From sequence record PQ657772.1: a DNA stretch of 64,000 bases; one strand, given 5' to 3'. Shown here piece by piece: positions 3,720-64,000 of this stretch. How positions within the stretch are numbered: position 1 is the stretch's first letter; every line of letters begins with the position of its first letter. Made by a program: the position numbers and the translations under genes. The notes beneath the pieces were generated by a model. The model did not search any database and had not been told where the DNA came from. It saw nothing but the letters and a program-made list of their open reading frames with translations.

Positions 3720-4862
3720 CTAAAAATCCTTTAGTACAATTTTCATGTACTTAATAAGAGTCTCTTTGTAATCGACTTTCTTATTGTTGTACATTGCAAA
3801 GGCCAAGCCCTGACGATTCAGTTCATTAGTTAAACACTCCTGAACCTTCTTAGCGAATTCCTTTCGCTCCAAGTGCTTGTGTTCCTTGACGAAGCTTTCA
3901 ACTTCATCTTGTAAAGCATTATAGCACGAAAAGACTAGTTGTTCCATTCTTAATATCTTTTGGGTAGCATATTCGTCAGTACTGAACAACTGTTTTAAAT
4001 CATCACTCGAACCATTTAATACAGCTTCATATAAATGGGAATCGATTATAATACTGTCTTTCGTTAAATGCAAAGAACAATACCAGTCGGTTTTGATTTT
4101 GCACATTGTACCATTATTTAGGATGCACACAAAACCTTCAATGTCAAGCATTTTCTTAACTTCTTCAACACTTTCTTTGAATGTAGCACGAACAGGGAAA
4201 GTGTAATGAATATCTTTACCTGTCATGTTAGTACTGTACTGTGCAAGGCATGGAAACTTGTTACGTAATGCAGAACCACATAATAGTTCACCACTCTTGC
4301 GATGGCGAACGTTTAGTACAAATATTTGTTCAACCTGGTATGGTAATACAATACGGTACTCTGGACTTGTATACTCCAGATTAACAGTATAGCCCAAACG
4401 GTCTGCTTCGTCAATGTATTGATACAAATTTTGGTTCTCATTGAGAAGACGAGTACTGTTAATCGCATGATCTGAATACAATGCAGTATGTGATTTACAA
4501 CGAATTACACCATCATTATCACGGTAAGTACTGATTACTGAACCATCCAACTTAGGCATCACTACTGTAATGTCATCGAATGTGGTATCAGCAGGGAACA
4601 TTGTAGCAGGATTTTCGTAAGCATTGAAGAACTTTTTCATAGTACGAGCAGCACAACGAATCATATCACCGTCTTCATCAATTTCCCACATAGAACCACG
4701 TGTTTCTAATGCATTGGGTTGCATGAAATCGGTATATGATGCTAGACGATAACTGAATACACGATACGTTCCACCAGCAGGACTTTTATGATCCACATAA
4801 AAGAAAGCCTCACGGGTATTACATAAGTGCATTAAATCTTCATATATTTGTAAAAGGGTCAT
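3720..4862 (-). CDS. rnlA: RNA ligase 1 (T4 Rnl1/gp63-like)
   Basis: Motif I PKLDGS, KFFN, LEYTSPEYRIV, EGFV, KIKTDWY; near pseT. Confidence 0.92.
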   Translation of the reverse strand: MTLLQIYEDLMHLCNTREAFFYVDHKSPAGGTYRVFSYRLASYTDFMQPNALETRGSMWEIDEDGDMIRCAARTMKKFFNAYENPATMFPADTTFDDITVVMPKLDGSVISTYRDNDGVIRCKSHTALYSDHAINSTRLLNENQNLYQYIDEADRLGYTVNLEYTSPEYRIVLPYQVEQIFVLNVRHRKSGELLCGSALRNKFPCLAQYSTNMTGKDIHYTFPVRATFKESVEEVKKMLDIEGFVCILNNGTMCKIKTDWYCSLHLTKDSIIIDSHLYEAVLNGSSDDLKQLFSTDEYATQKILRMEQLVFSCYNALQDEVESFVKEHKHLERKEFAKKVQECLTNELNRQGLAFAMYNNKKVDYKETLIKYMKIVLKDF

Positions 4863-31950: not shown

Positions 31951-32131
31951 AACGGATATCCTTCTGTAAAGAATCAATATATTCTTTAACAACTTGTTCC
32001 TGATACTGTGTGCCCAAATACATCAGTACTTTTAATTCTTTGAATTCAGTACTATATGAGTCAATTTGCATCATTTTAGAAGAATATATATTGAATAGTT
32101 TAGCAATATCATCTTGGTCTATTATTTTCAT
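31940..32131 (-). CDS. LGTNYQ-family small protein (dispersed copy)
   Basis: LMYLGTQYQEQVVKEYI. Confidence 0.75.
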   Translation of the reverse strand: MKIIDQDDIAKLFNIYSSKMMQIDSYSTEFKELKVLMYLGTQYQEQVVKEYIDSLQKDIRYVQ

Positions 32132-32327
32132 ATATTCTCTTCTGGATTAGTTCCTGTAAGTGCTGAATATAACCCTTCATTGCAACATCCTGTTTGTTAG
32201 AGCCAACGAAGAACAATAGCTTAAAGTCATGGTAATCCATTTTTGGTTTAGTAGTGAACCATATGTCCCACACTGCACTCACAGTTCTCATGTATTCAAT
32301 TCGATTAAATGTTTTTGAATACTTCAT
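32109..32327 (-). CDS. LGTNYQ-family small protein (dispersed copy)
   Basis: FFVGSNKQDVAMKGYI. Confidence 0.65.
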   Translation of the reverse strand: MKYSKTFNRIEYMRTVSAVWDIWFTTKPKMDYHDFKLLFFVGSNKQDVAMKGYIQHLQELIQKRIYENNRPR

Positions 32328-32841
32328 CGATGTTCATCGCCAATAAGTTAATATACAAATTACTGTTAAATGCAATCTGCAATTCCATATAGAACTGAAT
32401 GATAGCATAGTCAGGGTCAGTACACGATAGTTGAAAACACTGTTCGTCAAATGCATTGTAACTGTACTTAGGGATGTGAATTTCACGCTTCAAATCAGGT
32501 TGACCCCACTTCATCGCATACACACCAATGTTATTGTTCTTTTTCCTTTTCTTAAATGTTAATTGTTGAATATTTCCAGCGTTGTCTAGGAAAATAGTAT
32601 TATTCGACACAGGTGCACCAATAGAAAACAATGATGTATCAATGACGTGTTTCTCACGTATCTCACACTTCTGGAATGCACCATTCCCTTGTAACAGTTT
32701 ATGGAAATCGTACTTCTCATTAACAACAGTACTAGGATCAATTAATCCAGTACTGCATTTTTTCAGTACTGGTACGATAGTGCGAATCTTTTTTGATAAA
32801 TCTTGTAATGCATCATAATCATTAATGTTAATTTTTCTCAA
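32305..32841 (-). CDS. FQxS-motif family protein
   Basis: FDEQCFQLSCTDP. Confidence 0.72.
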   Translation of the reverse strand: MRKININDYDALQDLSKKIRTIVPVLKKCSTGLIDPSTVVNEKYDFHKLLQGNGAFQKCEIREKHVIDTSLFSIGAPVSNNTIFLDNAGNIQQLTFKKRKKNNNIGVYAMKWGQPDLKREIHIPKYSYNAFDEQCFQLSCTDPDYAIIQFYMELQIAFNSNLYINLLAMNIDEVFKNI

Positions 32842-33284
32842 AAGGATGCCTCTTCTATAGTAACGAAATCAACTAACCTATCAAGTTTTTCAGTGTCTAG
32901 ATAAAATATATCCAGTACTGACTTCTGATATAGTACACTAAATGTACATAGATTGTCAAGTGTTCCTTCATTATAAACAGTACTTCCCTGGAAGTACCCT
33001 TCTTCTGTACTCAGAGATAAAATATCAGAAATTTTAAAAGATTCTTCATTCTCATGACGCTCTATCGTAACTTCATCATATTTTCTGTTCAATGAAATAT
33101 AATCGTATGCTAATTCAATAGTACTACAGTTGTTGTTGCTAGTGTCAAATAAAGAATCAATTGTAATCTTCGTACCATTAGAAACTTCTCTTCGTTCATC
33201 ATCTACGTATTCAGGATTTTCTTTGAAGAACTTAACAACTTTTAGAATATCATTTGCTTTCTTGATTGCACTTTCGTAACTCAT
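32838..33284 (-). CDS. FQxS-motif family protein, SLESAL subfamily
   Basis: MSYESAIKKA; TEEGYFQGSTVYN. Confidence 0.78.
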   Translation of the reverse strand: MSYESAIKKANDILKVVKFFKENPEYVDDERREVSNGTKITIDSLFDTSNNNCSTIELAYDYISLNRKYDEVTIERHENEESFKISDILSLSTEEGYFQGSTVYNEGTLDNLCTFSVLYQKSVLDIFYLDTEKLDRLVDFVTIEEASF

Positions 33285-33724
33285 TTTTTTCTGGACTCCA
33301 TATATATCACCTGATTTAGTTCATATACATAATCTAAATCAATGAATATAGAATTATTAAAGTTCTCTTTCAGGAATGCATTAAAAACTACTAAAGCTCT
33401 TAACGCCCCATTTGGGTATATAGTACTGTACTGGAAGTAAGCATCTTCTGAATTTAAAAATAGTACTTCTTCTTCTGTGAATTCAAAATATTTTCCACCT
33501 TCCTCTATATAATAGAAAGTTCCAGAATCCCATACGAAGTACTTGAATTCCAAATCATAATCATGGGACTCGTACTTATATTCATTACCTAATCCTAGAA
33601 TATCTGTACCAACACTTATAGTACTAATATATGCCCCTTTATAGTCTAAGTACTTTACATTATTTTGAAAGAACTTTACTATATTAACTAATTCTTCAGC
33701 GTGCTTAAGATCACTTTCGTACAT
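33281..33724 (-). CDS. FQxS-motif family protein, SLESAL subfamily
   Basis: MYESDLKHA; SEDAYFQYSTIYP. Confidence 0.78.
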   Translation of the reverse strand: MYESDLKHAEELVNIVKFFQNNVKYLDYKGAYISTISVGTDILGLGNEYKYESHDYDLEFKYFVWDSGTFYYIEEGGKYFEFTEEEVLFLNSEDAYFQYSTIYPNGALRALVVFNAFLKENFNNSIFIDLDYVYELNQVIYMESRKK

Positions 33725-34038
33725 TATATTTCAATCTCTATATATTTTTGGGTAATTAAGTAATCCCAGTAGTACTTCACTTGTTTTTGTATCTCAAGTA
33801 AAGCATAAAAATTAATTCTCTTATCCCATACAAGTGATTCCTGAAAAAGAAATGTTTCATGATCATCTCTGTAATCACATTCAAGGAAGTCAGGAATATA
33901 ATCACAATCGTGAAGATATTCAATCATTAAAGATTCATTACATCTTCTAACGGCAAGGTGCTGGAAATTATCATGATCGAAGAAATACATTAAACTAATT
34001 GTACCTGGAATGTACTGAATACTGTATAATAATTTCAT
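33724..34038 (-). CDS. FQxS-motif family protein
   Basis: HETFLFQESLVWD. Confidence 0.75.
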   Translation of the reverse strand: MKLLYSIQYIPGTISLMYFFDHDNFQHLAVRRCNESLMIEYLHDCDYIPDFLECDYRDDHETFLFQESLVWDKRINFYALLEIQKQVKYYWDYLITQKYIEIEI

Positions 34039-34478
34039 CGTTTACCCTTATGTGCTGCACGTACATATTCATAATCCAAATAAAATCTTGTGCTATCAAT
34101 ACTTTTAAAGTACCACATAATAACTAAAGTATCTAGTACTTCATCATCATACAAAGTACTATTCTGAAAGTAATACTCTTCACTATCCCACGGGCCTTTC
34201 AGTACTTCAAAGTTCAATTTTAAAGGTCTGCTGCGATTATAAAAACGGATTTCACCACCATAAGCATAACTGATAAATTCTGCATCTGGATTGTATTGTG
34301 AAAAATCTGCGGGACTTTTGGAATTCAACCCAAGAATAACTGTAGTTGTAGCAAAATCACAATCCTTGTAGTAGTTACCATTCTCGGCTTTGTATACTTC
34401 TTCGAACTTCCCAGCCTTAATATCTTCAATATATGCCTGTAGTTCTTTTGCTTTATCAAGAGCACTTCGTAATGACAT
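34035..34478 (-). CDS. FQxS-motif family protein, SLESAL subfamily
   Basis: MSLRSALDKA; GPWDSEEYYFQNSTLYD. Confidence 0.8.
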   Translation of the reverse strand: MSLRSALDKAKELQAYIEDIKAGKFEEVYKAENGNYYKDCDFATTTVILGLNSKSPADFSQYNPDAEFISYAYGGEIRFYNRSRPLKLNFEVLKGPWDSEEYYFQNSTLYDDEVLDTLVIMWYFKSIDSTRFYLDYEYVRAAHKGKR

Positions 34479-34944
34479 TATCTTCCCCTACAGTATTCTC
34501 TACGTATTCATAATCGAAATAGAAACTATCAGAACCAATACTTTTAAAGTACCACATAATTACAATAACATCTAATTCTTCTTCATTGTACACAGTACTG
34601 TTCTGGAAGTAATATTCTTCACTATCCCACGGACCTTCTAGTACTGAATACGGAATGATTGTGTCATCATCATCGTAATCAGGGCTGTAAATTATAATAT
34701 CTTCATCTCTACAATAACTAATGTACTGATTGTACATATGATATTCACAGTCATCAGTATCACCCGTATCAGTGTGTAGTACTAACGTTTCTGCACATAT
34801 CTCTGACTCATCATAATCGTCGCGGTCTTTTACAAAAAATTCAGTATCAGATGTTTTATACACACCAGGCACTGAACCTTCTTGTACCATAATCATGTAC
34901 TCATGAATCTTCTTTGCTTCTTTCAATGCACTTTCTAATGACAT
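34456..34944 (-). CDS. FQxS-motif family protein, SLESAL subfamily
   Basis: MSLESALKEA; GPWDSEEYYFQNSTVYN. Confidence 0.8.
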   Translation of the reverse strand: MSLESALKEAKKIHEYMIMVQEGSVPGVYKTSDTEFFVKDRDDYDESEICAETLVLHTDTGDTDDCEYHMYNQYISYCRDEDIIIYSPDYDDDDTIIPYSVLEGPWDSEEYYFQNSTVYNEEELDVIVIMWYFKSIGSDSFYFDYEYVENTVGEDNVITKCS

Positions 34945-34946
34945 TA

Positions 34947-35387
34947 CTAATCCCCTGTACTTAAATATTCACATGCTCCCCAGTCAAGGAAGAAGGGTTC
35001 AAAATTCAATTCCTTAAAGTACCACAAAACAACCAAGGAATCAAGCATTTCTTGGTTAAAAATAAGACTCTGTTGGAAGTAATACTCTTCAGTACCCCAC
35101 GGCCCATCAAGTACCCCGAAGTCAACAGGTGTATTTGATGTGTCAAAAGTAATCTTAGTACCTGGAATATATACAAAAAAACTAGTATATTGACTACATG
35201 AAGAGTACTGTATAGTATTGTCTTTATCATGGCCCATAAGTAAAATATCATCAGAGTATGTCTTTATACCTGATAGATAATACTCATTACCAAATGCACT
35301 TACTTTATCACCATAGAAACCACTTTTTATGTTATCGTGGAAGTGATGTATTTTGTGTGCCAGTTTAAGTGCACTTGCTAAACTCAT
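34947..35387 (-). CDS. FQxS-motif family protein, SLESAL subfamily
   Basis: MSLASALKLA; GPWGTEEYYFQQSLIFN. Confidence 0.8.
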   Translation of the reverse strand: MSLASALKLAHKIHHFHDNIKSGFYGDKVSAFGNEYYLSGIKTYSDDILLMGHDKDNTIQYSSCSQYTSFFVYIPGTKITFDTSNTPVDFGVLDGPWGTEEYYFQQSLIFNQEMLDSLVVLWYFKELNFEPFFLDWGACEYLSTGD

Positions 35388-35854
35388 ATATCCTCTTTAA
35401 TAACTCGTAGTAGATCCAAGTCCAGATAGAAGCTAGGACAATCGGTATTATTAAAGTACCACAGAATGACAAGCTTGTCAAGCACATATTCCTCGTAGAT
35501 AGTATTCTGCTGGAAGTAGAACTCTTCACTTCCCCAGTCATTATCCAGTACTGAATACGGAAGATGTTTCTCTGCTGCACCAGTTATAATGTCAGTATAT
35601 TGTATTAAAATATCAGCATCACGACAGAAGTACATGTAATTATCTTCCAGATTAACATCACACCCAGTGAGTGTTGTTTCAGAAGAATCTAAGTTTTCTT
35701 CGTACATGTGAATGTACTCACTACTGTCATCGTATATCATTCGACAATAAGCTTTACCTTCCTTGAATAGATACCCATTGAGTCGATTGAGTACTATTTC
35801 CTTTTTACATAAATCAATTAACTTAGCAATTTCTAATGCTCTTTCTAAACTCAT
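35384..35854 (-). CDS. FQxS-motif family protein, SLESAL subfamily
   Basis: MSLERALEIA; WGSEEFYFQQNTIYE. Confidence 0.8.
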   Translation of the reverse strand: MSLERALEIAKLIDLCKKEIVLNRLNGYLFKEGKAYCRMIYDDSSEYIHMYEENLDSSETTLTGCDVNLEDNYMYFCRDADILIQYTDIITGAAEKHLPYSVLDNDWGSEEFYFQQNTIYEEYVLDKLVILWYFNNTDCPSFYLDLDLLRVIKEDI

Positions 35855-35855
35855 T

Positions 35856-36347
35856 TTAACCCCTGTTAATACCGTTATCTACAGTTTTCTTTACGTATTT
35901 GTAATCGAAATAGAAGTTCCCAGAACCAATACTTTTAAAGTACCACATAATTATAATAACATCAAGTACTTCATTATCGTATACAGTACTTTGTTGGAAG
36001 TAATACTCTTCACTATCCCACGGACCTTCCAGTACTTCACTCGGAATTATAATGTCATCGGAATCGCTGTCAGTACTGTAGATGGTATTTGTATCATTAA
36101 TATAGACCATGTACTCATTATGCATATTAATGTAGCATTCATAATCATTAGGGTCGGTATCTAGTATGCACGTTTCTGTATCCAGTACGCACGTTTCTGT
36201 ATCTGAGCAGTCATTATAAAGGAGGTTATCCGGTACATAATATTGAGTACTTGTGTCTTTGAAAACACCGTAAACTGAACCTTCTTTTGCCATATTCATG
36301 TACTCATGAATCTTCTTTGCTTTTTCCAATGAACTCTGTAATGTCAT
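35856..36347 (-). CDS. FQxS-motif family protein, SLESAL subfamily; close paralogue of 34456..34944
   Basis: MTLQSSLEKA; GPWDSEEYYFQQSTVYD. Confidence 0.8.
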   Translation of the reverse strand: MTLQSSLEKAKKIHEYMNMAKEGSVYGVFKDTSTQYYVPDNLLYNDCSDTETCVLDTETCILDTDPNDYECYINMHNEYMVYINDTNTIYSTDSDSDDIIIPSEVLEGPWDSEEYYFQQSTVYDNEVLDVIIIMWYFKSIGSGNFYFDYKYVKKTVDNGINRG

Positions 36348-55767: not shown

Positions 55768-56100
55768 TTACATTTTGATACCTGGATTCAGGTAGCGGTG
55801 AGATCCATATTCTGGATCGGTTTCGGTCCAGTACTGTAAATCTATAGTACCTTTAGCGTTAATCTTATCTACCAGCTTATTCATCTTAGCGTATACTACA
55901 TCAGCATCGATGCGTTTAAAGCCAGTGGCTTTAGTGAAGTAGTAGTGATTTGCTTCACTATCATTCAGGATGTACCGAGAACCGTTTGCCGTTTGTGCGA
56001 TAATGATTGAGTATTCTACGTTACGGTCGAGGCCGTCGATGAATACAGAGGAAACATTAGTACGGATGAAAGCTTTAACGATAGCGATTGAAGTAGTCAT
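55768..56100 (-). CDS. Early-region hypothetical protein
   Basis: AGGAG RBS; C-terminal IDLQYWTETDPEYGS. Confidence 0.78.
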   Translation of the reverse strand: MTTSIAIVKAFIRTNVSSVFIDGLDRNVEYSIIIAQTANGSRYILNDSEANHYYFTKATGFKRIDADVVYAKMNKLVDKINAKGTIDLQYWTETDPEYGSHRYLNPGIKM

Positions 56101-56118
56101 TTTGAATCTCCTAACTTT

Positions 56119-56182
56119 GTGGGCCGTCGCACCATTGCCGCCCTACGAGATACATTATCGCAGTACTGATATACTTTGTCAA
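56119..56182 (-). promoter_or_regulatory. Early promoter + stem-loop cassette
   Basis: TTGACA-17-GATAAT, GC hairpin before RBS. Confidence 0.72.
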
Positions 56183-56251
56183 TACTTTTTTTATTAATAG
56201 TTTTAGTTCCACCAGCAGATAGTTACTCACCGTTATTAACTATATATTTTG

Positions 56252-56335
56252 GATACACCTATGCACCCTGTGGGCTAGTTTTTGTCTATGCGTATATAAT
56301 AGCAAAGGGACTGACCGGAGTCAATCCCTTTTTTT
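56252..56335 (-). repeat. Terminator/promoter/small-RNA module, copy 1
   Basis: 41-bp core TATATAATAGCAAAGGGACTGACCGGAGTCAATCCCTTTTT identical at 56293, 59053, 62060. Confidence 0.85.
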
Positions 56336-56346
56336 ATTCTTTTTTG

Positions 56347-56547
56347 TTAGATGATTCTCCAATCATCAACGATCATGGTAAGATACCGAACCAGTGATTC
56401 GAGTGATTCGTGTTCTCGATAGTCTGCCGCTCCACCAGCGGTACAAGTACAGCCGATTAAGCCGTTTTGTAGTTCCTGGATCTTTACGTCGATCTGGTTG
56501 GCTTTAGCTTCTTTCAGTACTTCAACCAGGGCGATAGCGATAGACAT
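56347..56547 (-). CDS. Early-region hypothetical protein
   Basis: GGAG RBS after cassette. Confidence 0.75.
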   Translation of the reverse strand: MSIAIALVEVLKEAKANQIDVKIQELQNGLIGCTCTAGGAADYREHESLESLVRYLTMIVDDWRII

Positions 56548-56569
56548 AATGTTTTACTCCAAACTATTG

Positions 56570-56630
56570 GCGGGAGAACTATTCCCCCGCTCTATGTAAA
56601 ACATTATACATTACTGGTTAGTACTGTCAA
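56570..56630 (-). promoter_or_regulatory. Early promoter + stem-loop cassette
   Basis: TTGACA-16-TATAAT, hairpin CGGGGGAATAGTTCTCCCG. Confidence 0.8.
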
Positions 56631-56637
56631 ATAGTTT

Positions 56638-56895
56638 TTATGAAATATCTTCGATGTAGTCGGCCCATTTCATTTTTTCAGTACTGTCAATGGCTACCGG
56701 ATTATTTGGATCAAACCATTCACCATCACCGCAATACATACCCACGGCTACGGTTTTATAGCCATCCTGGGCCGTACACCACGACATTGCACGATAGATA
56801 TGGCCTTTAACTGGTTGCAGTACTGGTAACGTTTTATGGTCTTCTACGTAGGCCATAGCTTGAGGATTTACCCGATATTGTGTGAACTGATCCAT
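56638..56895 (-). CDS. Early-region hypothetical protein
   Basis: AAGGGG RBS; upstream TTGACA at 56947-56952. Confidence 0.75.
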   Translation of the reverse strand: MDQFTQYRVNPQAMAYVEDHKTLPVLQPVKGHIYRAMSWCTAQDGYKTVAVGMYCGDGEWFDPNNPVAIDSTEKMKWADYIEDIS

Positions 56896-56971
56896 TATGT
56901 TTCCCCTTGTAGTTAGTAAAGTTATTACATCAGTACTATCAAGCTATGTCAATAGTACTGAAATAAAACTT

Positions 56972-57196
56972 TTAGATTAGATTATTGAGGCCGTCAATGG
57001 TAGACTCACTTTCTTCTTTCTCCCATTGTCGGTAGTACTTCCATGCTTCATGATAGGTGGCGATTAGTTCATCTTTTTGATCCTGGTTACATGCCAGTAC
57101 TGAATCACGGTGAGCGGTGTTATAGATAGAATCGAATGATTTCTTCTCTTCTGCCAGGTTAGCTACTTCCCGCATCAGTTCATCAAAGTTAGCCAT
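56972..57196 (-). CDS. Early-region acidic helical protein
   Basis: AAGGAG RBS. Confidence 0.75.
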   Translation of the reverse strand: MANFDELMREVANLAEEKKSFDSIYNTAHRDSVLACNQDQKDELIATYHEAWKYYRQWEKEESESTIDGLNNLI

Positions 57197-57213
57197 TTTA
57201 TTACTCCTTTTAG

Positions 57214-57271
57214 TGGGGGAGGATATCTCCCCCTATGCAAAACATTATACTTTGTTTTAGTTATTATGCAA
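57214..57271 (-). promoter_or_regulatory. Early promoter + stem-loop cassette
   Basis: TTGCAT-16-TATAAT, hairpin GGGGGAGATATCCTCCCCC. Confidence 0.8.
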
Positions 57272-57527
57272 GTACTTTTTTCATATAAACATTAAATTCT
57301 ACACCGCCGTAACCTTCCACGATGATATGTTTTGCGTTATCACGTTTGCACATAGTGAAACCATCGTTTACGTGTTTTGCATTTTCCAGGGCGACATCAC
57401 CGATAGCGGCACATACGGCACTAATAACAGTATTCCGCAAAGTACTGGTATCATTGGCGGTCATAGTAGTTTGCAGTACTACGTTGTCGTATACGTGTGC
57501 ATTGATAGTGATTTCGATAGTGTTCAT
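57264..57527 (-). CDS. Early-region hypothetical protein
   Basis: AGGAG RBS; start moved to MNTIEIT. Confidence 0.75.
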   Translation of the reverse strand: MNTIEITINAHVYDNVVLQTTMTANDTSTLRNTVISAVCAAIGDVALENAKHVNDGFTMCKRDNAKHIIVEGYGGVEFNVYMKKVLA

Positions 57528-57545
57528 GGTGTATCTCCTGGACTT

Positions 57546-57607
57546 GAGGGGAAACCATTTCCCCCTCTCGATATAAAACATTATACGTTAATCTAACTAC
57601 AATGCAA
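57546..57607 (-). promoter_or_regulatory. Early promoter + stem-loop cassette
   Basis: TTGCAT-16-TATAAT, hairpin GAGGGGGAAATGGTTTCCCCTC. Confidence 0.8.
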
Positions 57608-57614
57608 GTACTTT

Positions 57615-57806
57615 TTAAATTTTATTTCCGATATAGTCCGGCATGTTCTTTTCAGTCATACGCTTTGCTAATGTCTGCATATGGCTTATAGCGTTCAAGG
57701 TGTCTTCCTCCAGGGATGAATCAAGATAATCAGGATCATTCTTCACCTTGCAATGATTATGATATCGTAGTACTGCCAGTACTTTTTTAACTTCTTCTAC
57801 TGTCAT
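57615..57806 (-). CDS. Early-region hypothetical protein
   Basis: Tiling ORF. Confidence 0.7.
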   Translation of the reverse strand: MTVEEVKKVLAVLRYHNHCKVKNDPDYLDSSLEEDTLNAISHMQTLAKRMTEKNMPDYIGNKI

Positions 57807-58075
57807 AATAAGTACCCCACTTCGTTAGCTTTCAGGTTAGTATCAATCATCAGTGGATTTTTGTAGTTCACAAAACGAGTAGTTTTCTCGATAGCGAAAC
57901 CCATATAATCCAGCTTACTAACAGTACATTCATTCTTAAAAACTTCTTTCGCTGCATCGATGGCTGATTGCATGGATAACCGACCATCTAAATTAATGTT
58001 TCCAAATGATCCACCAGCAGAAGTAGGATTACCGTTCATATCTTTAATGATCATAGTAGCGGAGTAGCTGGACAT
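57803..58075 (-). CDS. Early-region hypothetical protein
   Basis: AAGGA RBS after cassette. Confidence 0.75.
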   Translation of the reverse strand: MSSYSATMIIKDMNGNPTSAGGSFGNINLDGRLSMQSAIDAAKEVFKNECTVSKLDYMGFAIEKTTRFVNYKNPLMIDTNLKANEVGYLL

Positions 58076-58099
58076 AATTTTGTTTCCTTTTATTGGTGT

Positions 58100-58164
58100 G
58101 GGGAGAACTATTCTCCCCTTGATGTAAACTATTATACAGTACTGATATACTTTGTCAAATACTT
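58100..58164 (-). promoter_or_regulatory. Early promoter + stem-loop cassette (65 bp identical to 58594..58658)
   Basis: TTGACA-AAGTATATCAGTACTG-TATAAT, hairpin GGGGAGAATAGTTCTCCCC. Confidence 0.85.
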
Positions 58165-58572
58165 TTATTCGCCCATATAGATTAGATTATCATCGCCTAC
58201 ATAGGGATCGCAAACGTTGATTTCTTCGCAGTACTTAGTGAATATATCATCATAGTGACCGATATCACGATCCCAAAAACCAGTGCCGTGACCTTCGCGA
58301 GTAAGAAAGAGATCATGACCTGCATGACTATAAGTATAATCAGGATTATGGTGTTTTTGTACTGTTTCCATATCTTCACCATGTACAGCAAGGAAACGTG
58401 AACATGCAATCACTGCCGCTTGATGGGCTTGCTCTGATAATTCATAATCTTCCAGGTAATCGCCGTTCTCATTGTGTACAGTACTGAATTGCATAGCTTC
58501 AATGTAACCAGCGACCATTGCAGCATGATTTTTATCGTTGGCGATGGACCGAGCTTGATTAGTAGTAGTCAT
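58165..58572 (-). CDS. Early-region protein with GHDxxLTRxGHGxGFWDR motif
   Basis: AGHDLFLTREGHGTGFWDRD; function unknown. Confidence 0.75.
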   Translation of the reverse strand: MTTTNQARSIANDKNHAAMVAGYIEAMQFSTVHNENGDYLEDYELSEQAHQAAVIACSRFLAVHGEDMETVQKHHNPDYTYSHAGHDLFLTREGHGTGFWDRDIGHYDDIFTKYCEEINVCDPYVGDDNLIYMGE

Positions 58573-58593
58573 GATTTTATTCCTTTTAGTATC

Positions 58594-58658
58594 GGGGAGA
58601 ACTATTCTCCCCTTGATGTAAACTATTATACAGTACTGATATACTTTGTCAAATACTT
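58594..58658 (-). promoter_or_regulatory. Early promoter + stem-loop cassette (65 bp identical to 58100..58164)
   Basis: Exact direct repeat. Confidence 0.85.
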
Positions 58659-58878
58659 AATTACGGATAAAGTGATAAAGACCATTATCATCATTAACGC
58701 CCCATACTGATTTACCATTTAAACCAGTGAAGCCGGATTGCAATTCAATATGGAAACCGTTAGCATCAACGACGAAAACTTTTTTATTTTCATCCCGATA
58801 GCATTGATATTCTTCACCTGCTTTAAATGCTGCATCATTCAGAAGATTTGAAGCGTGAACGCAGGTCATAGTAGTCAT
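58657..58878 (-). CDS. Early-region hypothetical protein
   Basis: AAGGA RBS; start moved to MTTMTC. Confidence 0.72.
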   Translation of the reverse strand: MTTMTCVHASNLLNDAAFKAGEEYQCYRDENKKVFVVDANGFHIELQSGFTGLNGKSVWGVNDDNGLYHFIRN

Positions 58879-58900
58879 CGTCTTGATTCCTTTTAGTACC

Positions 58901-58961
58901 AGGGAGAACCATTTCCCCCTCTCGATATAAAACATTATACGCTCATTGAGATAGTTTGCAA
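58901..58961 (-). promoter_or_regulatory. Early promoter + stem-loop cassette
   Basis: TTGCAA-16-TATAAT, hairpin AGGGGGAAATGGTTCTCCCT. Confidence 0.8.
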
Positions 58962-59006
58962 GTACTTTTTATCAAATAGTTTTCAGTACTGAATACTTAT
59001 ATAATA

Positions 59007-59094
59007 GATACACTTCCGCACCCTATGGGTCAGTGAGTTATCTCTCAATGGATATATAATAGCAAAGGGACTGACCGGAGTCAATCCCTTTTTT
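59007..59094 (-). repeat. Terminator/promoter/small-RNA module, copy 2
   Basis: 41-bp core identical; downstream ACCCATAGGGT hairpin. Confidence 0.85.
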
Positions 59095-59102
59095 AATCTT
59101 TT

Positions 59103-59687
59103 TTATCGTGTTACCTTACTTGCTGCCACATCACGCTTTTTATAGTACTGATTCCAGATATTGCTGGTTAAACCGTAATCAAGTACTTTAATAAGTCCAT
59201 TACGATCCTGGCCGATATTCTGTTTTCTGATATCTCTTATCGTTAGTGTTGATAATGTATCATCAACGTGTTGTAGTGCATCAGCAAAGCGGTGCTGGCG
59301 TTCGATTGCATTACGTTTAATATTGTACTTTAATTCATTGCACGCGTTTACGTGCTTCACACTGCCTTTGCTTGCAGTACTCAACCGATCCATAACGATA
59401 AACATATTATCAGGATCGCATAAATGCATATGCACCTTTGCAAAGTACTGTTTCAACTGAGGGCGGTCATAGTCTAAAAAATTCCATACCTTACATTCAG
59501 TTTCATTTTGTTCGACACCCGCATCACAATTCGCGACCTTAATCACTAACCGATCATTTAAAGCGAATACTATACGGGAAGAACCAGCACCGATGATCTC
59601 CAGGCCAGCTAACCGACAAGCTGAAAGGATCTCTTTGTTGGTTTCCATTTCTGACAGTGTACGGATGAATTTAGTATATTTACGCAT
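59103..59687 (-). CDS. Protein kinase-like (ePK/APH-fold) early protein
   Basis: Gly-rich IGAGSSRIVF, VIKVA, NETE, catalytic DIRKQNIG, VLDYGL; start moved to MRKYTK. Confidence 0.78.
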   Translation of the reverse strand: MRKYTKFIRTLSEMETNKEILSACRLAGLEIIGAGSSRIVFALNDRLVIKVANCDAGVEQNETECKVWNFLDYDRPQLKQYFAKVHMHLCDPDNMFIVMDRLSTASKGSVKHVNACNELKYNIKRNAIERQHRFADALQHVDDTLSTLTIRDIRKQNIGQDRNGLIKVLDYGLTSNIWNQYYKKRDVAASKVTR

Positions 59688-59718
59688 TGCATGTTCTCCT
59701 TGAGTTAATGAAACTATA

Positions 59719-59961
59719 TTACAGTACTTTACTATCAATGGCAACTACTTTTTTAACATTAACGGCGTGGATCACTTCCTTAGTGTTTTTAGTACTGAAT
59801 ACTTTCGCCGCTCCTTGTTCGACCGTGATACGATAGCGACCATTAACATCAACCATATTAATAAAGTCCGGCGTGCTGAATGGTGTTGTTTTACATTTGA
59901 GTACTGTTAACAGTTCCACCAGCGATGTAGTTTCTTTGATACGTTTTTCTAAAGTAATCAT
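59719..59961 (-). CDS. Early-region hypothetical protein
   Basis: GGGGGGA RBS; promoter TTGACA-17-TATTAT at 59991-60019. Confidence 0.72.
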   Translation of the reverse strand: MITLEKRIKETTSLVELLTVLKCKTTPFSTPDFINMVDVNGRYRITVEQGAAKVFSTKNTKEVIHAVNVKKVVAIDSKVL

Positions 59962-60015
59962 TTTGTTTCCCCCCGTGTTGGTATGTGTACATAATACTAA
60001 AACAATTGAGTACTG

Positions 60016-60270
60016 TCAACGTGATATTAGTTTTATTTTCTTATTGTATTGTTGATGCTCATAAAGGTTTATCTTTCCTGTGTTCTCGATTACTATCCTG
60101 TTGTTAGTGTCCACGTCGATTACACGCAGTTTCCCGTTGCTTAACTTCCTAGGTAATAGGTTACCATTAATAAACTCATTAGCAAGCTGTACGGCCTTTG
60201 TGATGATTCTCTGAGGTGCTTTATAGTGTACCCGTAAGATGTTATCTTTATATAGTTGAACCTTAATCAT
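60016..60270 (-). CDS. Possible ParE/RelE-like toxin-fold protein
   Basis: P.RI..KA......G....RKL......V....RI......EHQQYN pattern recalled from phage ParE-like family; not searched. Confidence 0.45.
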   Translation of the reverse strand: MIKVQLYKDNILRVHYKAPQRIITKAVQLANEFINGNLLPRKLSNGKLRVIDVDTNNRIVIENTGKINLYEHQQYNKKIKLISR

Positions 60271-60284
60271 TTTGTTTGTCCTAT

Positions 60285-60310
60285 AAAAAAGGCGGGAACT
60301 GATCCCGCCG
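60285..60310 (-). terminator. Intrinsic terminator
   Basis: GGCGGGA-TCAGT-TCCCGCC then TTTTTT. Confidence 0.8.
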
Positions 60311-60331
60311 TGTTGTTAGTACTGCAAGTTA

Positions 60332-60736
60332 TTAGATAACCTGGCGGCGTTTACTGTATACTGTTACACGATTACCCTTACGGTCGTGTCGGATCTCTTT
60401 CTGGTTGCGAATCAGTTCACTTGGACGCTTAAGGTTTGCCAGGTGATCCGCGTGAGTCCATGCATTTGCGTTAACTGTAACTTCAATATCAGAACCTTTC
60501 AAGAAGTCATCTTGAGCGTTCAGTACTTCAGCCAGTTCTTGAGCTTGCTTTAGTTCTGCTGCTGTAAGTACAGGCTCAGGTGAATTCACAATATCAGAGA
60601 TCTCTTTGAACTGTACCGCCCAGCGTTTACCAGTAGGAGAATCTTTACCCATGTCTTTAAATGTTTCACCTTCCTCACGGGCAACGATGCGAGCTTGTTC
60701 ACGGGTAGCGAAGAATTTAGTAATCATGGTGTACAT
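60332..60736 (-). CDS. Early-region hypothetical protein
   Basis: AGGA RBS; promoter TTGACA-17-TATAAT at 60776-60804. Confidence 0.78.
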   Translation of the reverse strand: MYTMITKFFATREQARIVAREEGETFKDMGKDSPTGKRWAVQFKEISDIVNSPEPVLTAAELKQAQELAEVLNAQDDFLKGSDIEVTVNANAWTHADHLANLKRPSELIRNQKEIRHDRKGNRVTVYSKRRQVI

Positions 60737-60826
60737 CCTATTAGTTAAGTTAATTAGTACTACAAGTTAGAGTCTATTATAAAGTACTATCTGGGCAATG
60801 TCAAATAGTACTTTAAATGGATTCTA

Positions 60827-61150
60827 TTACATGTCTTTCTTACGTTTTACATCGTAGTAGCGAACTGTAATTTCTTTGTTGATCTCTTTCTCAATTCTGT
60901 GTAGTACTTTCTCTTTCGGGTTGAAACCTATTACAGTTTCCTTAATGATTTCTAAACCCGTGTACTCACCTTGTGTGCCGTAACCGTATGTAAAGGTTTC
61001 GTGTCCCAGGTCTTCCCAGCGATCACCAATCAATGCGGACACGTAGCAGGAGTGGTAAGTATTGCCGTGGCTATCAGTCCACCGATTAACTTTAATGTCA
61101 AAGGAGGTTACAATTTTCAGTTCTACTTTCTGGGTAAGGATCATAGCCAT
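60827..61150 (-). CDS. Early-region hypothetical protein
   Basis: Follows cassette 61174..61234. Confidence 0.78.
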   Translation of the reverse strand: MAMILTQKVELKIVTSFDIKVNRWTDSHGNTYHSCYVSALIGDRWEDLGHETFTYGYGTQGEYTGLEIIKETVIGFNPKEKVLHRIEKEINKEITVRYYDVKRKKDM

Positions 61151-61173
61151 TTTTATTTCTCTCTCTTTGTTAG

Positions 61174-61234
61174 GAGGGGAACCATTCCCCTCGCTTGATG
61201 TAAACTATTATACAGTACTAAGATACTTTGTCAA
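61174..61234 (-). promoter_or_regulatory. Early promoter + stem-loop cassette
   Basis: TTGACA-16-TATAAT with AGTACT in spacer; near-identical to 61444..61505. Confidence 0.82.
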
Positions 61235-61237
61235 TAC

Positions 61238-61420
61238 TTATTTTTTGGAAAGTTTACGCATTAATTCTACGCTTTCTTGTGAACGTTTTGCTACTTGACA
61301 AGCTGCATGGGCAGTAAACATTTTTGTATAGTCTGACGCTTTGCCACCGAACCGAGCGGCACGTTCACGGGCACTTGGAACTAATACGATTTCTTTCTTA
61401 CAGATAGTGCACTTAGCCAT
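61238..61420 (-). CDS. Small zinc-binding (CxxC...HxxC) early protein
   Basis: MAKCTICKK...TAHAAC; start moved. Confidence 0.7.
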   Translation of the reverse strand: MAKCTICKKEIVLVPSARERAARFGGKASDYTKMFTAHAACQVAKRSQESVELMRKLSKK

Positions 61421-61443
61421 TTTAATTTCTCTCTCTTTGTTAG

Positions 61444-61505
61444 GAGGGGAACCGTTTCCCCTCACTTGATGTAAACTATTATACAGTACTAAGATACTTT
61501 GTCAA
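61444..61505 (-). promoter_or_regulatory. Early promoter + stem-loop cassette
   Basis: TTGACA-16-TATAAT, hairpin GAGGGGAAACGGTTCCCCTC. Confidence 0.82.
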
Positions 61506-61508
61506 TAC

Positions 61509-61784
61509 TTAAGTATTGTAAATGTCGTGAATAGTGATAAAGTTTTTACGACCGTAAACATGTAAATCAGTATCAATGTAGTGCTTATCAAGTACATCCT
61601 CGACGCTTAAAGACGTGTCGTGAATATCTTCATAAAATTGTGGATCAACAATCGTGCTTAAGTCATCTGGCGTTAACTTATCGTTAAGGCATTGAACCGC
61701 CTGGATATCTGCTTCACGTTTCCATTGTTCCAGATTAGTAGTCAGTACTTGCTCGATTTCGTTAGCTGTAAGTAAAGTCCGCAT
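61509..61784 (-). CDS. Early-region acidic protein
   Basis: AAGGA RBS; promoter TTGACA-16-TATAAT at 61818-61845. Confidence 0.75.
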   Translation of the reverse strand: MRTLLTANEIEQVLTTNLEQWKREADIQAVQCLNDKLTPDDLSTIVDPQFYEDIHDTSLSVEDVLDKHYIDTDLHVYGRKNFITIHDIYNT

Positions 61785-61894
61785 TTTAATGTTTCCTTAT
61801 CAGTGGTTGATGTAAGTATTATACTCGTTTACTTTCTATTGTCAAACTATTTTATCAGGGGAGTTTTTCGTATGTCTTACTCCTGGACTACTTA

Positions 61895-61961
61895 ACGGGG
61901 TTACTTATTTCGTTCCCCGTCCTGATGTAAAACATTATACGCTTATCGTGATACTTTGCAA
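61895..61961 (-). promoter_or_regulatory. Early promoter + stem-loop cassette with no downstream ORF
   Basis: TTGCAA-16-TATAAT, hairpin, AGGAG, but no ATG/GTG ORF before the next promoter. Confidence 0.7.
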
Positions 61962-62018
61962 GTACTTTTTTAAAAATAGTTTTCAGTACTTGATAGTACT
62001 AGCCACCAGCAAACAATA

Positions 62019-62100
62019 GATACATTTATGCACCCGGTGGGCTAATTTGTTTCTATGCGTATATAATAGCAAAGGGACTGACCGGAGTCAATCCCTTTTT
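62019..62100 (-). repeat. Terminator/promoter/small-RNA module, copy 3
   Basis: 41-bp core identical; downstream GCCCACCGGGT hairpin. Confidence 0.85.
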
Positions 62101-62109
62101 CAATTATTT

Positions 62110-62259
62110 TTAAACTTCTTTCGGGTTGCGATATGTGATAGCGTTCGGGTACATTTGTTTAATGTTATTCCATGCCTGGTTAACATTATAACCACTTGAT
62201 CGAATCAGTTGGTTATTACCGACACCTTGAAACACTACTTCAAATAAGAATTCTTTCAT
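62110..62259 (-). CDS. 49-aa early protein (not in ORF track)
   Basis: MKEFLFEVVFQGVGNNQLIRSSGYNVNQAWNNIKQMYPNAITYRNPKEV; ATGA overlap. Confidence 0.65.
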   Translation of the reverse strand: MKEFLFEVVFQGVGNNQLIRSSGYNVNQAWNNIKQMYPNAITYRNPKEV

Positions 62260-62429
62260 GCTTTCACCTCGCTATCTGCTTTGCCTTTACGCCAGGCCGT
62301 TGCTAATTGTTCGCGTTGCCATAAGTCGAGTGATACGTAAAGTTTTGCATTATCACCCTTCGGATATTCGCCAGTAGTACCAATCCGATAAAACAGATCT
62401 TTCAGTACTGTTAATTCTACCTGGACCAT
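62256..62429 (-). CDS. Early-region hypothetical protein
   Basis: GAGGA RBS; start moved to MVQVELTV. Confidence 0.7.
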   Translation of the reverse strand: MVQVELTVLKDLFYRIGTTGEYPKGDNAKLYVSLDLWQREQLATAWRKGKADSEVKA

Positions 62430-62450
62430 TATACTTTCCTCTTTGTTAGG

Positions 62451-62508
62451 AGGGGAACTATTCCCCTTCCGATATAAAACATTATACACTTTATTCAGTA
62501 CTGTGCAA
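62451..62508 (-). promoter_or_regulatory. Early promoter + stem-loop cassette
   Basis: TTGCAC-16-TATAAT, hairpin AGGGGAATAGTTCCCCT. Confidence 0.8.
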
Positions 62509-62515
62509 GTACTTT

Positions 62516-62728
62516 TTAATCTTTCAGCCAATGATCCTGAATGAATTTTTCACCGGAACCGTGCTGCATTGATTGTAACAGACGTTCGCGATGAGCGGCG
62601 GCGAATTGCTCAGTACTATGCGTTACACCTGGTTGATATCTGGATTCACCATTTGGGGCGATGTATTGTACATCCCACGGTTTTTCGTTAGTATCAGACC
62701 ATTTACGAACGATTAGTTGACCTTGCAT
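62516..62728 (-). CDS. Early-region hypothetical protein
   Basis: GAGGA RBS. Confidence 0.72.
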   Translation of the reverse strand: MQGQLIVRKWSDTNEKPWDVQYIAPNGESRYQPGVTHSTEQFAAAHRERLLQSMQHGSGEKFIQDHWLKD

Positions 62729-62745
62729 TTTTCTTTCCTCTTAGT

Positions 62746-62805
62746 GGGGAGAATCATTTCTCCCCTTCATGTAAACTATTATACAGTACTATAATCTATT
62801 GTCCA
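62746..62805 (-). promoter_or_regulatory. Early promoter + stem-loop cassette
   Basis: TGGACA-16-TATAAT, hairpin GGGGAGAAATGATTCTCCCC. Confidence 0.78.
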
Positions 62806-62813
62806 GTACTTTT

Positions 62814-63002
62814 TTACAGTTTATGAATTAATTCTTTATCTAAGCGATAGCGTACATTATTAATGGTAACAGCATTATTTTTAATGCTACGCTGTACGGG
62901 TCCACCAGCAATAACAAACGTTGCTTTATTGCCCCGAACAATGATAGCACTTCCAGGATTACCGAAATCATCTTGTACTAAAATACTTGATAAGTTTTCC
63001 AT
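62814..63002 (-). CDS. Early-region hypothetical protein
   Basis: GAGGA RBS. Confidence 0.72.
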   Translation of the reverse strand: MENLSSILVQDDFGNPGSAIIVRGNKATFVIAGGPVQRSIKNNAVTINNVRYRLDKELIHKL

Positions 63003-63019
63003 TTTTATTTCCTCTTAGT

Positions 63020-63077
63020 AGGGGAAGATGTTTCCCCTTGATGCAAGTACTATAACAGTACTGAAAACTAAATGCAA
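63020..63077 (-). promoter_or_regulatory. Early promoter + stem-loop cassette
   Basis: TTGCAT-17-TATAGT, hairpin AGGGGAAACATCTTCCCCT. Confidence 0.75.
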
Positions 63078-63080
63078 GTA

Positions 63081-63437
63081 CTATGATAAAATCATGATAG
63101 GATATTCACTATCGATCAGTACCTCGAATCCGAAACCTTCGTACCATTCTTTAAGATTAAAGGCGTTATCTTCTCCCGTATCGCATTCTAAGATGATACA
63201 ATCTGAATCATCGGCGGCATCAATAAAGGCATTCATTAATTCGTTACCTTCACCATTGCCCCGACTATCAGGATCAACATAAAGAGAATCAATAAACGCT
63301 ACACGGTCATAATCAAGATCCGGTGCAATGATTCCACGTTTAACAAACCAGTACTGCAATTGTGCTACTTTGCCCTGTACCTGATAACCAGTGATCTCGC
63401 CATTGTCAGTAGTACGCGTGATATGTTGTATTCCCAT
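63081..63437 (-). CDS. GNAT-family acetyltransferase
   Basis: IDSLYVDPDSRGNGEG (motif A, RGxGxG), LKEWYEGFGF; promoter TTGACA-16-TATAAT at 63467-63494. Confidence 0.8.
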   Translation of the reverse strand: MGIQHITRTTDNGEITGYQVQGKVAQLQYWFVKRGIIAPDLDYDRVAFIDSLYVDPDSRGNGEGNELMNAFIDAADDSDCIILECDTGEDNAFNLKEWYEGFGFEVLIDSEYPIMILS

Positions 63438-63500
63438 GATTACTATCCTCAGTTAAGATATAAAACATTATACACTATCTTTCAGTACTGTCAATACTTT

Positions 63501-63758
63501 TTATCTCATAGATCTATGCCAACAATTACGCGGATCTCTTTTAAAAGTACTATCATGATCCTCCTGGCAAGTAATACAATACATGCACCCTATAACGGCC
63601 TGGCGTCGATTCTCAGGGATTTTATCGCCGCAGTCGAGGCAATGTACCAGTGATTCTCTTTGTGCGTTAATTTGCTTTCTAGCGTGGTTAACGGCTGCCT
63701 GAATCACTGCGTGAATCTCGTCTTGTTCGGCCCCGTCTTTCGCGTATCCTACTGCCAT
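63501..63758 (-). CDS. TraR/DksA-family C4 zinc-finger protein
   Basis: N-terminal DGAEQDEI, then CLDCGDKIPENRRQAVIGCMYCITCQ. Confidence 0.85.
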   Translation of the reverse strand: MAVGYAKDGAEQDEIHAVIQAAVNHARKQINAQRESLVHCLDCGDKIPENRRQAVIGCMYCITCQEDHDSTFKRDPRNCWHRSMR

Positions 63759-63919
63759 TATTTTAACCTCATTATAAAAATACTATAGTACTGTAATGCT
63801 ACAATAATACTACTAGTGTTTATCTTATTCAAACCATATGATACTACATATCCACCAGCATTACCACGGATAGTAACGCCTTTGTACTGTCTATATAAAT
63901 TCAACTGCGTATATTGCCT

Positions 63920-63991
63920 TTGATCAAGAATTGATCAGAATTATACGCCTTATGCTAAATTGATCCAGTACTTTTTGATCATTTATTGATC
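63920..63991. repeat. Five TTGATC (GATC) copies in 72 bp
   Basis: At 63920, 63931, 63960, 63975, 63986. Confidence 0.7.
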
Positions 63992-64000
63992 GATATTATA

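Follow-up and report, generated by a model that had tools for sequence, protein, structure and literature searches.

Predicted terminator hairpins with an embedded early promoter precede a conserved structured RNA motif in RaK2-like jumbo phages

Three modules in the early-gene region of phage EC.P1

We analyzed a stretch of 64,000 nucleotides (hereafter the window) of the jumbo coliphage EC.P1 (PQ657772.1; 356 kb; RaK2/121Q group), the end of which coincides with the end of that record. The window carries three modules on its minus strand, each consisting of an identical 41-bp core, predicted to serve both as a terminator hairpin and as a promoter, and of a conserved RNA motif that begins at the predicted transcription start. 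The 6.2 kb around the modules were 100% identical to EC.P1 and 90 to 96% identical to 121Q, the PBECO4-group phages, G17, fEgEco12, and others. In G17, vB_Ec-M-J, Muenster, fENko-Kae01, and CBB, the homologous DNA falls within annotated direct terminal repeats, and a direct terminal repeat of 20,993 bp was demonstrated in fEgEco12 by restriction mapping (PMC13070987). Judged by this homology, the modules lie in the early-gene region that corresponds to the direct terminal repeat (~21 kb) of the relatives.

The genes of the module region are all small minus-strand open reading frames (ORFs) annotated as hypothetical, and 10 of them fell into 10 different PHROG families, all of unknown function. 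Nearly every gene is preceded by its own consensus promoter (perfect TTGACA-N16/17-TATAAT, n = 7 in 6.9 kb), and hairpins of the type GGGGAG...CTCCCC (repeat families D1 and D5) occur in the early 5' untranslated regions (5' UTRs). A search of the window for tRNA and tmRNA genes returned none.

A 39-nt pattern of the core had exactly three minus-strand matches (56293, 59053, and 62060) and none in 100 shuffles; direct reading extended the identical stretch to 41 bp (56293 to 56333 in copy 1; repeat family D12). By consensus scan, all three copies contain the hairpin AAAGGGATTGAC-TCCG-GTCAGTCCCTTT and the promoter TTGACT-17-TATTAT, whose -10 element is preceded by TG. An initial annotation, made from the letters of the window, had reported both the identical 41-bp core at these three positions and the minus-strand TTGACT-17 nt-TATTAT within it, and both were recovered here. 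Its transcription starts (56289, 59049, and 62056) agree with those predicted from the -10 boxes. The partly conserved segment that it had described downstream of the cores was also found again: CCCAYAGGGTGC-N5-TGTATC occurs three times in the window (0, 0, and 1 mismatches), compared with 0.02 occurrences expected. The coordinates of the features are given in Table 1.

Table 1. Features of the three modules and related elements. Terminators, promoters, and starts are predictions.
Feature	Position	Strand	Remarks
Copy 1 terminator hairpin, AAAGGGAUUGAC-UCCG-GUCAGUCCCUUU	56304..56331	minus	16 nt past stop of ORF 56347-56547
Copy 1 -35 TTGACT	56319-56324	minus	inside hairpin DNA
Copy 1 extended -10 TGcTATTAT	56296..56304	minus	predicted start 56289
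Copy 1 A-rich tract upstream of hairpin	56332..56346	minus	resembles UP element; A-tract retained in relatives
Copy 1 RNA motif, short class: AUAG, 3-bp P1, GCCCACAGGGUGC-AUAGG-UGUAUCC	56251..56289	minus	covariance model, 70.1 bits
Next promoter after copy 1, TTGACA-17-GATAAT	56154..56182	minus	serves ORF 55768-56100
Chi GCTGGTGG	56209..56216	minus	~75 nt past copy 1 start
Copy 2 terminator hairpin	59064..59091	minus	12 nt past stop of kinase-like ORF ending 59103; -35 at 59079-59084
Copy 2 extended -10	59056..59064	minus	predicted start 59049
Copy 2 RNA motif, long class: P1 UGAG/CUCA from AUUGAGAGAUAACUCA, then CUGACCCAUAGGGUGC-GGAAG-UGUAUCU	59006..59049	minus	covariance model, 86.4 bits
Next promoter after copy 2, TTGCAA-16-TATAAT	58934..58961	minus	serves ORF 58657-58935
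Copy 3 terminator hairpin	62071..62098	minus	12 nt past stop of ORF 62110-62259; -35 at 62086-62091
Copy 3 extended -10	62063..62071	minus	predicted start 62056
Copy 3 RNA motif, short class without clear P1: AUAGAAACAAAUUAGCCCACCGGGUGC-AUAAA-UGUAUCU	62018..62056	minus	covariance model, 66.6 bits
Chi GCTGGTGG	62003..62010	minus	just past copy 3 RNA motif
Next promoter after copy 3, TTGCAA-16-TATAAT	61934..61961	minus	second at 61818-61845, before ORF 61509-61784
Tract UUUGCUAUU after hairpin stem	about 56296-56303 (copy 1) and equivalents in copies 2 and 3	minus
Fur-box-like palindromes in relatives	L008:6650-6700, L023:6060-6110, L010:8060-8110, L012:1270-1310, L013:320-360

One sequence as predicted terminator and promoter

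On the minus strand, each core encodes a hairpin with a 12-pair stem (5 GC pairs; folding energy, -19.5 kcal/mol), and in all three copies the CCCTTT of the stem is followed by GCTATTATAT. The stop codons at 56347, 59103, and 62110 sit 12 to 16 nt upstream of the hairpins. Under a hairpin-plus-T-run criterion, the three core hairpins represent three of the four minus-strand terminators found in 6.9 kb, and the same sites are predicted as terminators by ARNold in phage G17.

Since three identical copies cannot reveal selection, we collected the hairpins of relatives, i.e., 43 distinct promoter-embedding hairpins located upstream of the RNA motif. Pairing is maintained among these variants by compensatory changes (e.g., GGGAUUGAC/GUCAGUCCC, GUACUUGAC/GUCAGGUAC, and AGGAUUGAC/GUCAAUCCU). 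The gene-sense RNA was more stable than its complement in every variant (mean, -16.0 versus -10.0 kcal/mol), and G-U pairs, which the opposite strand reads as A-C mismatches, occur in 42 of the 43. Loops of UUCG, UCCG, or UACG closed by C-G were present in 27 variants; UNCG loops stabilize RNA specifically. With a stem and U-tract, a position close to the stop codon, and apparent selection on the sense strand, the core hairpin has the attributes of a Rho-independent terminator and is predicted to be one.

The hairpin had been described as bidirectional in the initial annotation. This label is doubtful because of the sense-strand stability, the G-U pairs, and the UNCG loops in the 43-variant set; in the window itself, a G-U pair of the minus strand is likewise an A-C mismatch of the plus strand, and no plus-strand gene converges here. 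The A-rich tract upstream of the hairpin may instead be an UP-like element of the embedded promoter, which explains it as well as a bidirectional terminator would.

As DNA, each core matches 10 of the 12 consensus sigma-70 positions, with a 17-nt spacer and TG before the -10 element. TTGAC, the 17-nt spacing, TGn, and the -10 element are retained across genera, while the outer stem and the loop vary, and the -10 columns are conserved in all 47 aligned members of the motif family described below. Between a stop codon and the next annotated ribosome-binding site (RBS) and ATG, GAP32, Munch, and 7t3 have no promoter other than the hairpin-promoter; the 66-nt gap between Munch genes 040 and 041, for example, holds the module without room for another promoter. 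Relatives also carry the hairpin-promoter without the motif, directly ahead of an RBS and ATG. On the basis of these sequence features, we predict that the 41-bp core is a strong host sigma-70 promoter that fully overlaps the terminator hairpin.

Structure of the RNA motif

Motif positions were numbered from the A of a conserved CAT, the predicted start. The RNA begins with AU(A/U/G)G, followed by an optional hairpin (P1) of 3 to 5 bp with a purine-rich loop (GCGAAA, GAGAAA, AGAUAA, or AGAACAA). All four P1 pairs change on both sides in a plain MAFFT alignment, with a covariation score reached by none of 500 shuffles. The score fell to a third or less in slid-register controls, and the P1 pairs topped a mutual-information scan. 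Covariation across relatives, which the initial annotation had named as a check, is thus present both in P1 and, as compensatory changes in 43 variants, in the terminator stems.

After UA, the second helix (P2) is formed by RCCC-AYN-GGGU. It is 98.7% paired across the family and corresponds to the CCC/GGG hairpin that had been noticed after the core. Its R:U pair alternates between G-U and A-U, and a double change from C-G to U-A occurs in two sequences. Twelve bases, CCCAYAGGGUGC, form the invariant core of the motif. Behind P2, a linker of GC and five mostly purine bases leads to a YRUCY tail, which can pair with the invariant GGGUG (P3; 90% paired, compared with 35 to 57% in slid registers) and varies solely by pair-keeping changes (GU/GC and UA/UG). 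Because both helices use the GGG, P2 and P3 are mutually exclusive; their energies are close (median difference, 2.1 kcal/mol), with no clear winner. The pair looks like a two-state element and possibly a conformational switch.

Two further structures were rejected. A closing helix between the 5' AUAG(A) and a 3' UCUAU tail was 65% paired, which was no better than shuffles, and a loop-to-tail pseudoknot or further helix found no covariation signal in the mutual-information scan.

The motif RNAs are 43 to 53 nt long. A coding role is rejected because the lengths differ by numbers that are not multiples of three and no frame is common to the family; in the window, only short nonconserved ORFs overlap the segment, consistent with the initial annotation, which had found no protein encoded there. 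Two of the functions suggested in that annotation fared less well. A guide-like RNA is unsupported because what varies is a hairpin and not a spacer, and for an antisense regulator no target was found within the window.

Distribution of the motif family

A promoter-blind regular expression (CCC-N3-4-GGGTGC-N4-6-TGTA) was run on the window and 24 loci and returned 49 distinct instances, which came from RaK2, KP13-7, GAP32, CBB, Munch, 7t3, Hallingskeid, 121Q, a Yersinia phage, a Serratia phage, and IMG/VR contigs. Of these, 47 with full flanks were aligned and 46 were scored for promoters. At least 10 of 12 sigma-70 matches were present just upstream of 43 of the 46 scored instances, compared with 3.9% of random positions, and the -10 element ends at a near-fixed distance of 21 to 30 nt ahead of the CCC of the motif.

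A covariance model of the motif had 121 matches (97 distinct) in about 17 RaK2-like genomes and contigs, including 3 in the window. About 200 IMG/VR loci match a 15-nt core of the motif; among 173 further loci searched with the covariance model, its matches were confined to contigs of 345 to 378 kb or fragments of such jumbo phages, and the motif is thus specific to RaK2-like jumbo phages. The remaining 15-nt matches in IMG/VR had no covariance-model match and were rejected as chance occurrences. Four motif loci per genome were found by BLAST, or eight when both terminal repeats are counted. The "triplicated small RNA" tied to the hairpin in the initial annotation is accordingly better described as a single family of 97 distinct copies, which also occurs behind ordinary promoters.

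Searches of other sequence collections were negative. Rfam 15 had no match in the window at the gathering score and none in six RaK2 copies at E values up to 5. In 596 Gb of bacterial genomes there were 12 scattered matches, none of them in enterobacteria (by our own estimate, approximately the chance level), and 5,426 Escherichia coli genomes had no match; host mimicry or a host origin of the motif was rejected on the basis of these searches. The motif string was absent in any relevant context from the searchable literature, in which we also found no Asteriusvirus transcriptome. By these comparisons, the motif represents an undescribed and well-supported RNA motif family.

Proposed function and genomic context

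The anatomy of the modules, their conservation, the covariation of P1 and of the terminator stems, the placement of the motif at +1 of promoters, and the stand-alone genes in relatives are observed. We propose that each module unites a terminator, a promoter, and a motif acting as an abundant early protein-binding RNA, and we put the probability of this statement as a whole at about 0.5. The hairpin RNA, with its UNCG tetraloop closed by C-G, would terminate transcription of the early gene before it. At the DNA level, the 41 bp would place the -35 TTGACT in the 5' arm, use the 3' arm as the 17-nt spacer, and be continued by TGcTATTAT, with the A-tract upstream, so that one sequence with both functions would stop and restart transcription within about 45 bp. 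The first 39 to 44 nt made from the embedded promoter would then be a member of the RaK2-like motif family, which would act as RNA and be abundant in the first minutes of infection. A conserved protein of the host or the phage is the probable ligand of the invariant module of ~30 nt, which would offer it a binding site or act as its decoy, and P2/P3 may form a switch. Recognition by a conserved protein is suggested because these ~30 nt are invariant across phages of many hosts (Escherichia, Klebsiella, Salmonella, Cronobacter, Pectobacterium, Erwinia, Yersinia, and Serratia).

The context of the motif differs with its orientation. Copies cooriented with the genes, as are all three in the window, have the hairpin-embedded promoter, and the next promoter follows without an intervening terminator. 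In relatives, copies on the opposite strand lie in intergenic gaps behind ordinary promoters; about 95 nt past their start, they meet the bidirectional terminator that belongs to the preceding gene. Anti-oriented copies with their own terminator were found in RaK2, KP13-7, Munch, 7t3, and others, and two stand-alone copies fold with z scores of -2.9 and -3.3. Judged by this layout, the opposite-strand copies are complete stand-alone small-RNA genes. An own promoter, the lack of an ORF, and a conserved structure with covariation, by which small-RNA genes are recognized, characterize the motif copies in general. At about 15 loci, two copies face each other with their 3' ends abutting.

The main rival explanation for the window copies is a read-through leader, i.e., a cis-acting 5' element that affects only its own transcript or polymerase, possibly through 5'-end protection from RNase E/RppH, as a processing site, by a promoter-proximal pause, or by put-like antitermination. 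The window copies indeed continue into the next gene without a terminator and may therefore be leaders of the downstream genes only. The motif, which opens with a hairpin or an A-rich segment, always starts 2 to 4 nt from the predicted 5' end, and every other early transcript here also begins with a 5'-UTR hairpin (families D1 and D5). By sequence reading, GGGUGC-N5-U|G would also fit the consensus elemental pause (G-10/Y-1/G+1), with P2 about 9 to 10 nt upstream. Many copies in relatives, however, point away from all genes and have a terminator about 95 nt downstream, and the convergent pairs have nothing to regulate. A stabilizing hairpin would not require 12 invariant bases, and the downstream genes are unrelated, each with its own consensus promoter. 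Those that follow the three window copies belong to three unrelated PHROG families, which argues against control of one particular gene; a common downstream gene as the motif target was rejected on the same ground. We therefore favor a self-acting RNA, since opposite-strand and convergent copies and unrelated genes do not suit downstream-gene control, and we regard the leader explanation, taken by itself, as less likely.

In relatives, the convergent motif pairs enclose an AT-rich palindrome close to the E. coli Fur box (e.g., TTGATAATGATAATCATTTAC compared with the consensus GATAATGATAATCATTATC), which could bind Fur or act as a bidirectional stop; the window contains no Fur box. These palindromes are among the features that would fit a role of the motif as DNA, i.e., as an operator at +20 to +45 for the shut-off of early promoters or as a T4-type R-loop replication origin. 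The 12 base pairs that never vary, their near-fixed spacing from the start, the AT-rich DNA that follows them, and the occurrence of the motif in either orientation relative to the genes point in the same direction. The compensatory changes in P1 and the pair-keeping changes in the R:U pair and P3 nevertheless speak for a folded single strand. The motif is missing from most consensus early promoters in the window, and up to 10 distinct copies are present in one 17- to 18-kb stretch of relatives, far beyond the need for origins. A DNA-level function is, in our judgment, very improbable.

Under another explanation, the modules would be PeSL-like insulator or shuffling cassettes only, and the conservation of the RNA would be a by-product of promoter-proximal constraints and gene conversion. 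PeSLs are composite terminator/promoter motifs in hyperplastic regions (PMC4122927). The three copies agree fully in the core but not in the flanks, a sign of concerted evolution, and the region is a run of small ORFans with repeated promoter/UTR modules. Matches in relatives are broken into several pieces and cover 60 to 78% of the region. Promoter/UTR repeats are joined in contigs from wastewater and other runs, with the omission of 271 to 3,320 bp (61193 to 61465, 58631 to 61952, and 58919 to 61469; at one joint, 49 nt fit both sides). The omission of such repeat-bounded stretches indicates that related phages are without whole gene cassettes. The joints nevertheless fall at other promoter repeats and not at the three copies of the core. 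The invariance of CCCAYAGGGUGC across genera and hosts, with P1 covarying and the flanks diverging, goes beyond gene conversion, and unrelated promoters precede the motif, which is found in both orientations. We consider cassettes of this kind an improbable account of the whole, if somewhat less so than a DNA-level function. The same division applies to the "transcriptional insulator" that the initial annotation had offered as an alternative: it describes the hairpin/promoter part well and leaves the invariant RNA motif unexplained.

Several observations weigh against the proposed combination of terminator, promoter, and protein-binding RNA. On the terminator side, the U-tract after the hairpin is short and interrupted (UUUGCUAUUAU), and termination may therefore be partial. 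As for the RNA structure, copies 1 and 3 and about a quarter of the family (short class) have a weak P1 or none, P2 and P3 are built on invariant bases, neither with strong compensatory support, and the window copies, folded as single sequences, show no significant stability (z scores, -0.4 to -1.6). No terminator was found between the motif and the next promoter in any of the three window copies, so that a discrete small RNA would need processing. Our searches returned no binding partner, target, or known RNA family for the motif, and the sole raw-read RNA run among 24 listed gave no reads on the stretch; three contig-based runs may derive from DNA and cannot show starts, ends, or strand.

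For the window copies, we tentatively suggest that the protein-binding RNA acts either while still the 5' segment of read-through transcripts or once processed. A bolder version of the proposal, which we rate no higher than the leader explanation, is that a multicopy RNA from the terminal repeat floods the cell within the first minutes and that its switchable CCCAYAGGGUGC...YRUCY module captures a conserved enterobacterial protein, for which a global RNA-binding regulator, a nuclease, and a defense sensor are candidates. If true, this would be an RNA-based device for host takeover or counter-defense, of a kind so far undescribed for RaK2-like phages.

Other features of the region

The gene at 59103 to 59690 (minus strand; upstream of copy 2) has a weak Pfam match to Pkinase (E value, 0.004; under the cutoff), and several relatives have its homologue under the annotation Ser/Thr kinase. 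Between 55700 and 63500 on the minus strand, nearly every small early gene has a promoter and then, just before the RBS, a 5'-UTR hairpin of the type GGGGAGAACTATTCTCCCC. These promoter/UTR-hairpin repeats form families of 5 to 10 copies (D1, D5, D6, and D11). The hexamer AGTACT occurs 217 times in the whole window, compared with about 22 expected, and is densest at 56000 to 64000 and 32000 to 36000; it is part of promoters (e.g., AAAAGTACTTGACA and CAGTACTGnnATAAT) and could be a factor site or a target of modification or restriction.

Chi (GCTGGTGG; read as CCACCAGC on the plus strand) is present on the minus strand at 4771, 56209, 56432, 58011, 59916, 62003, 62902, and 63852. The window has eight minus-strand sites and one plus-strand site (0.16 expected per strand), with seven of the eight in the last 8 kb. 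A similar polarity is seen in the loci of relatives (L003 to L009; RaK2, 6:0; 7t3, 11:0; Munch, 7:1; GAP32, 6:1), where the Chi sites are always on the early-gene sense strand and often within intergenic modules. By our reading of the orientation rule, the sites would face RecBCD entering from the terminal-repeat boundary at about 54850 of the window. On the minus strand between 50100 and 54700, ~10 small paralogous genes (~65 to 75 codons) follow each other at a spacing of 210 to 480 bp and have common blocks such as TCCTGATAGTTTGTTCC (repeat families D3, D7, D8, and D10); they form a tandem gene family just outside the terminal-repeat boundary.

RaK2-like jumbo phages are widely isolated for therapy against E. 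coli, Klebsiella, and Salmonella, and the annotation of their ~21-kb terminal-repeat early region consists almost wholly of hypothetical proteins. The analysis provides a regulatory map of this region, with consensus promoters, terminator/promoter hybrids, and polar Chi clusters. If the RNA is functional, the motif would represent a new phage RNA family active right at the onset of infection; should it be a leader and nothing more, the UNCG-loop terminator/promoter with its full overlap is still a compact natural design for an insulator.

Comparison with known systems

The PeSLs of T4-type phages (Arbiol 2010, PMC2839356; Comeau 2014, PMC4122927) are the closest known system to the hairpin/promoter part of the modules. 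They likewise combine a stem-loop/terminator with a sigma-70-type early promoter, and both they and the present modules recur among the small ORFan genes of plastic early regions. The PeSL nt-1 stem-loop consensus, A3-4G3-loop-C3T3-4, resembles the AAAGGG...CCCTTT of the present core. Cassette indels between repeated modules are also seen in relatives, with the joints at promoter repeats other than these three. The PeSL stem-loop, however, lies just upstream of its promoter, and the PeSL module ends with a Shine-Dalgarno sequence and start codon, and a similar layout is seen only in some relatives. In the present modules, the stem itself contains the -35 element and spacer, and a conserved noncoding motif and then a second promoter come after the promoter. 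Other phage early terminators that overlap promoters likewise have a GC-rich hairpin and U-run right after a stop codon, with reinitiation nearby; here, in contrast, the overlap is complete, with one 41-bp sequence for both and 43 variants across genera.

For the RNA motif, a loose precedent is provided by ncRNA001 and ncRNA002 of the Pseudomonas jumbo phage PA5oct, noncoding transcripts of the terminal repeat that are highly expressed throughout infection according to transcriptome sequencing (PMC7318152). They are 236 to 451 nt long, reportedly have sequence similarity only to phage MIJ3, and are of unknown function (PMC7318152). PA5oct is a distant relative of the RaK2 group, and no motif or structure has been described for these RNAs. 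Titrating RNAs of the CsrB/CsrC type likewise present many short hairpin modules made from strong promoters; they carry many modules each, however, whereas the present RNAs carry one. A CsrA-type GGA hairpin was rejected as a common feature of the family, since GGA is present in the P3 loop of only 40 of the 97 copies (41%) and absent from window copies 1 and 3 and 59% of the family.

The put antitermination RNA of phage HK022 is likewise a short structured RNA located just past early promoters and works without translation. The terminated and convergent copies in relatives do not suit such a read-through device. In comparison with these systems, the terminator that doubles as a promoter is a variation on a composite already known, and the RNA motif is an undescribed family.

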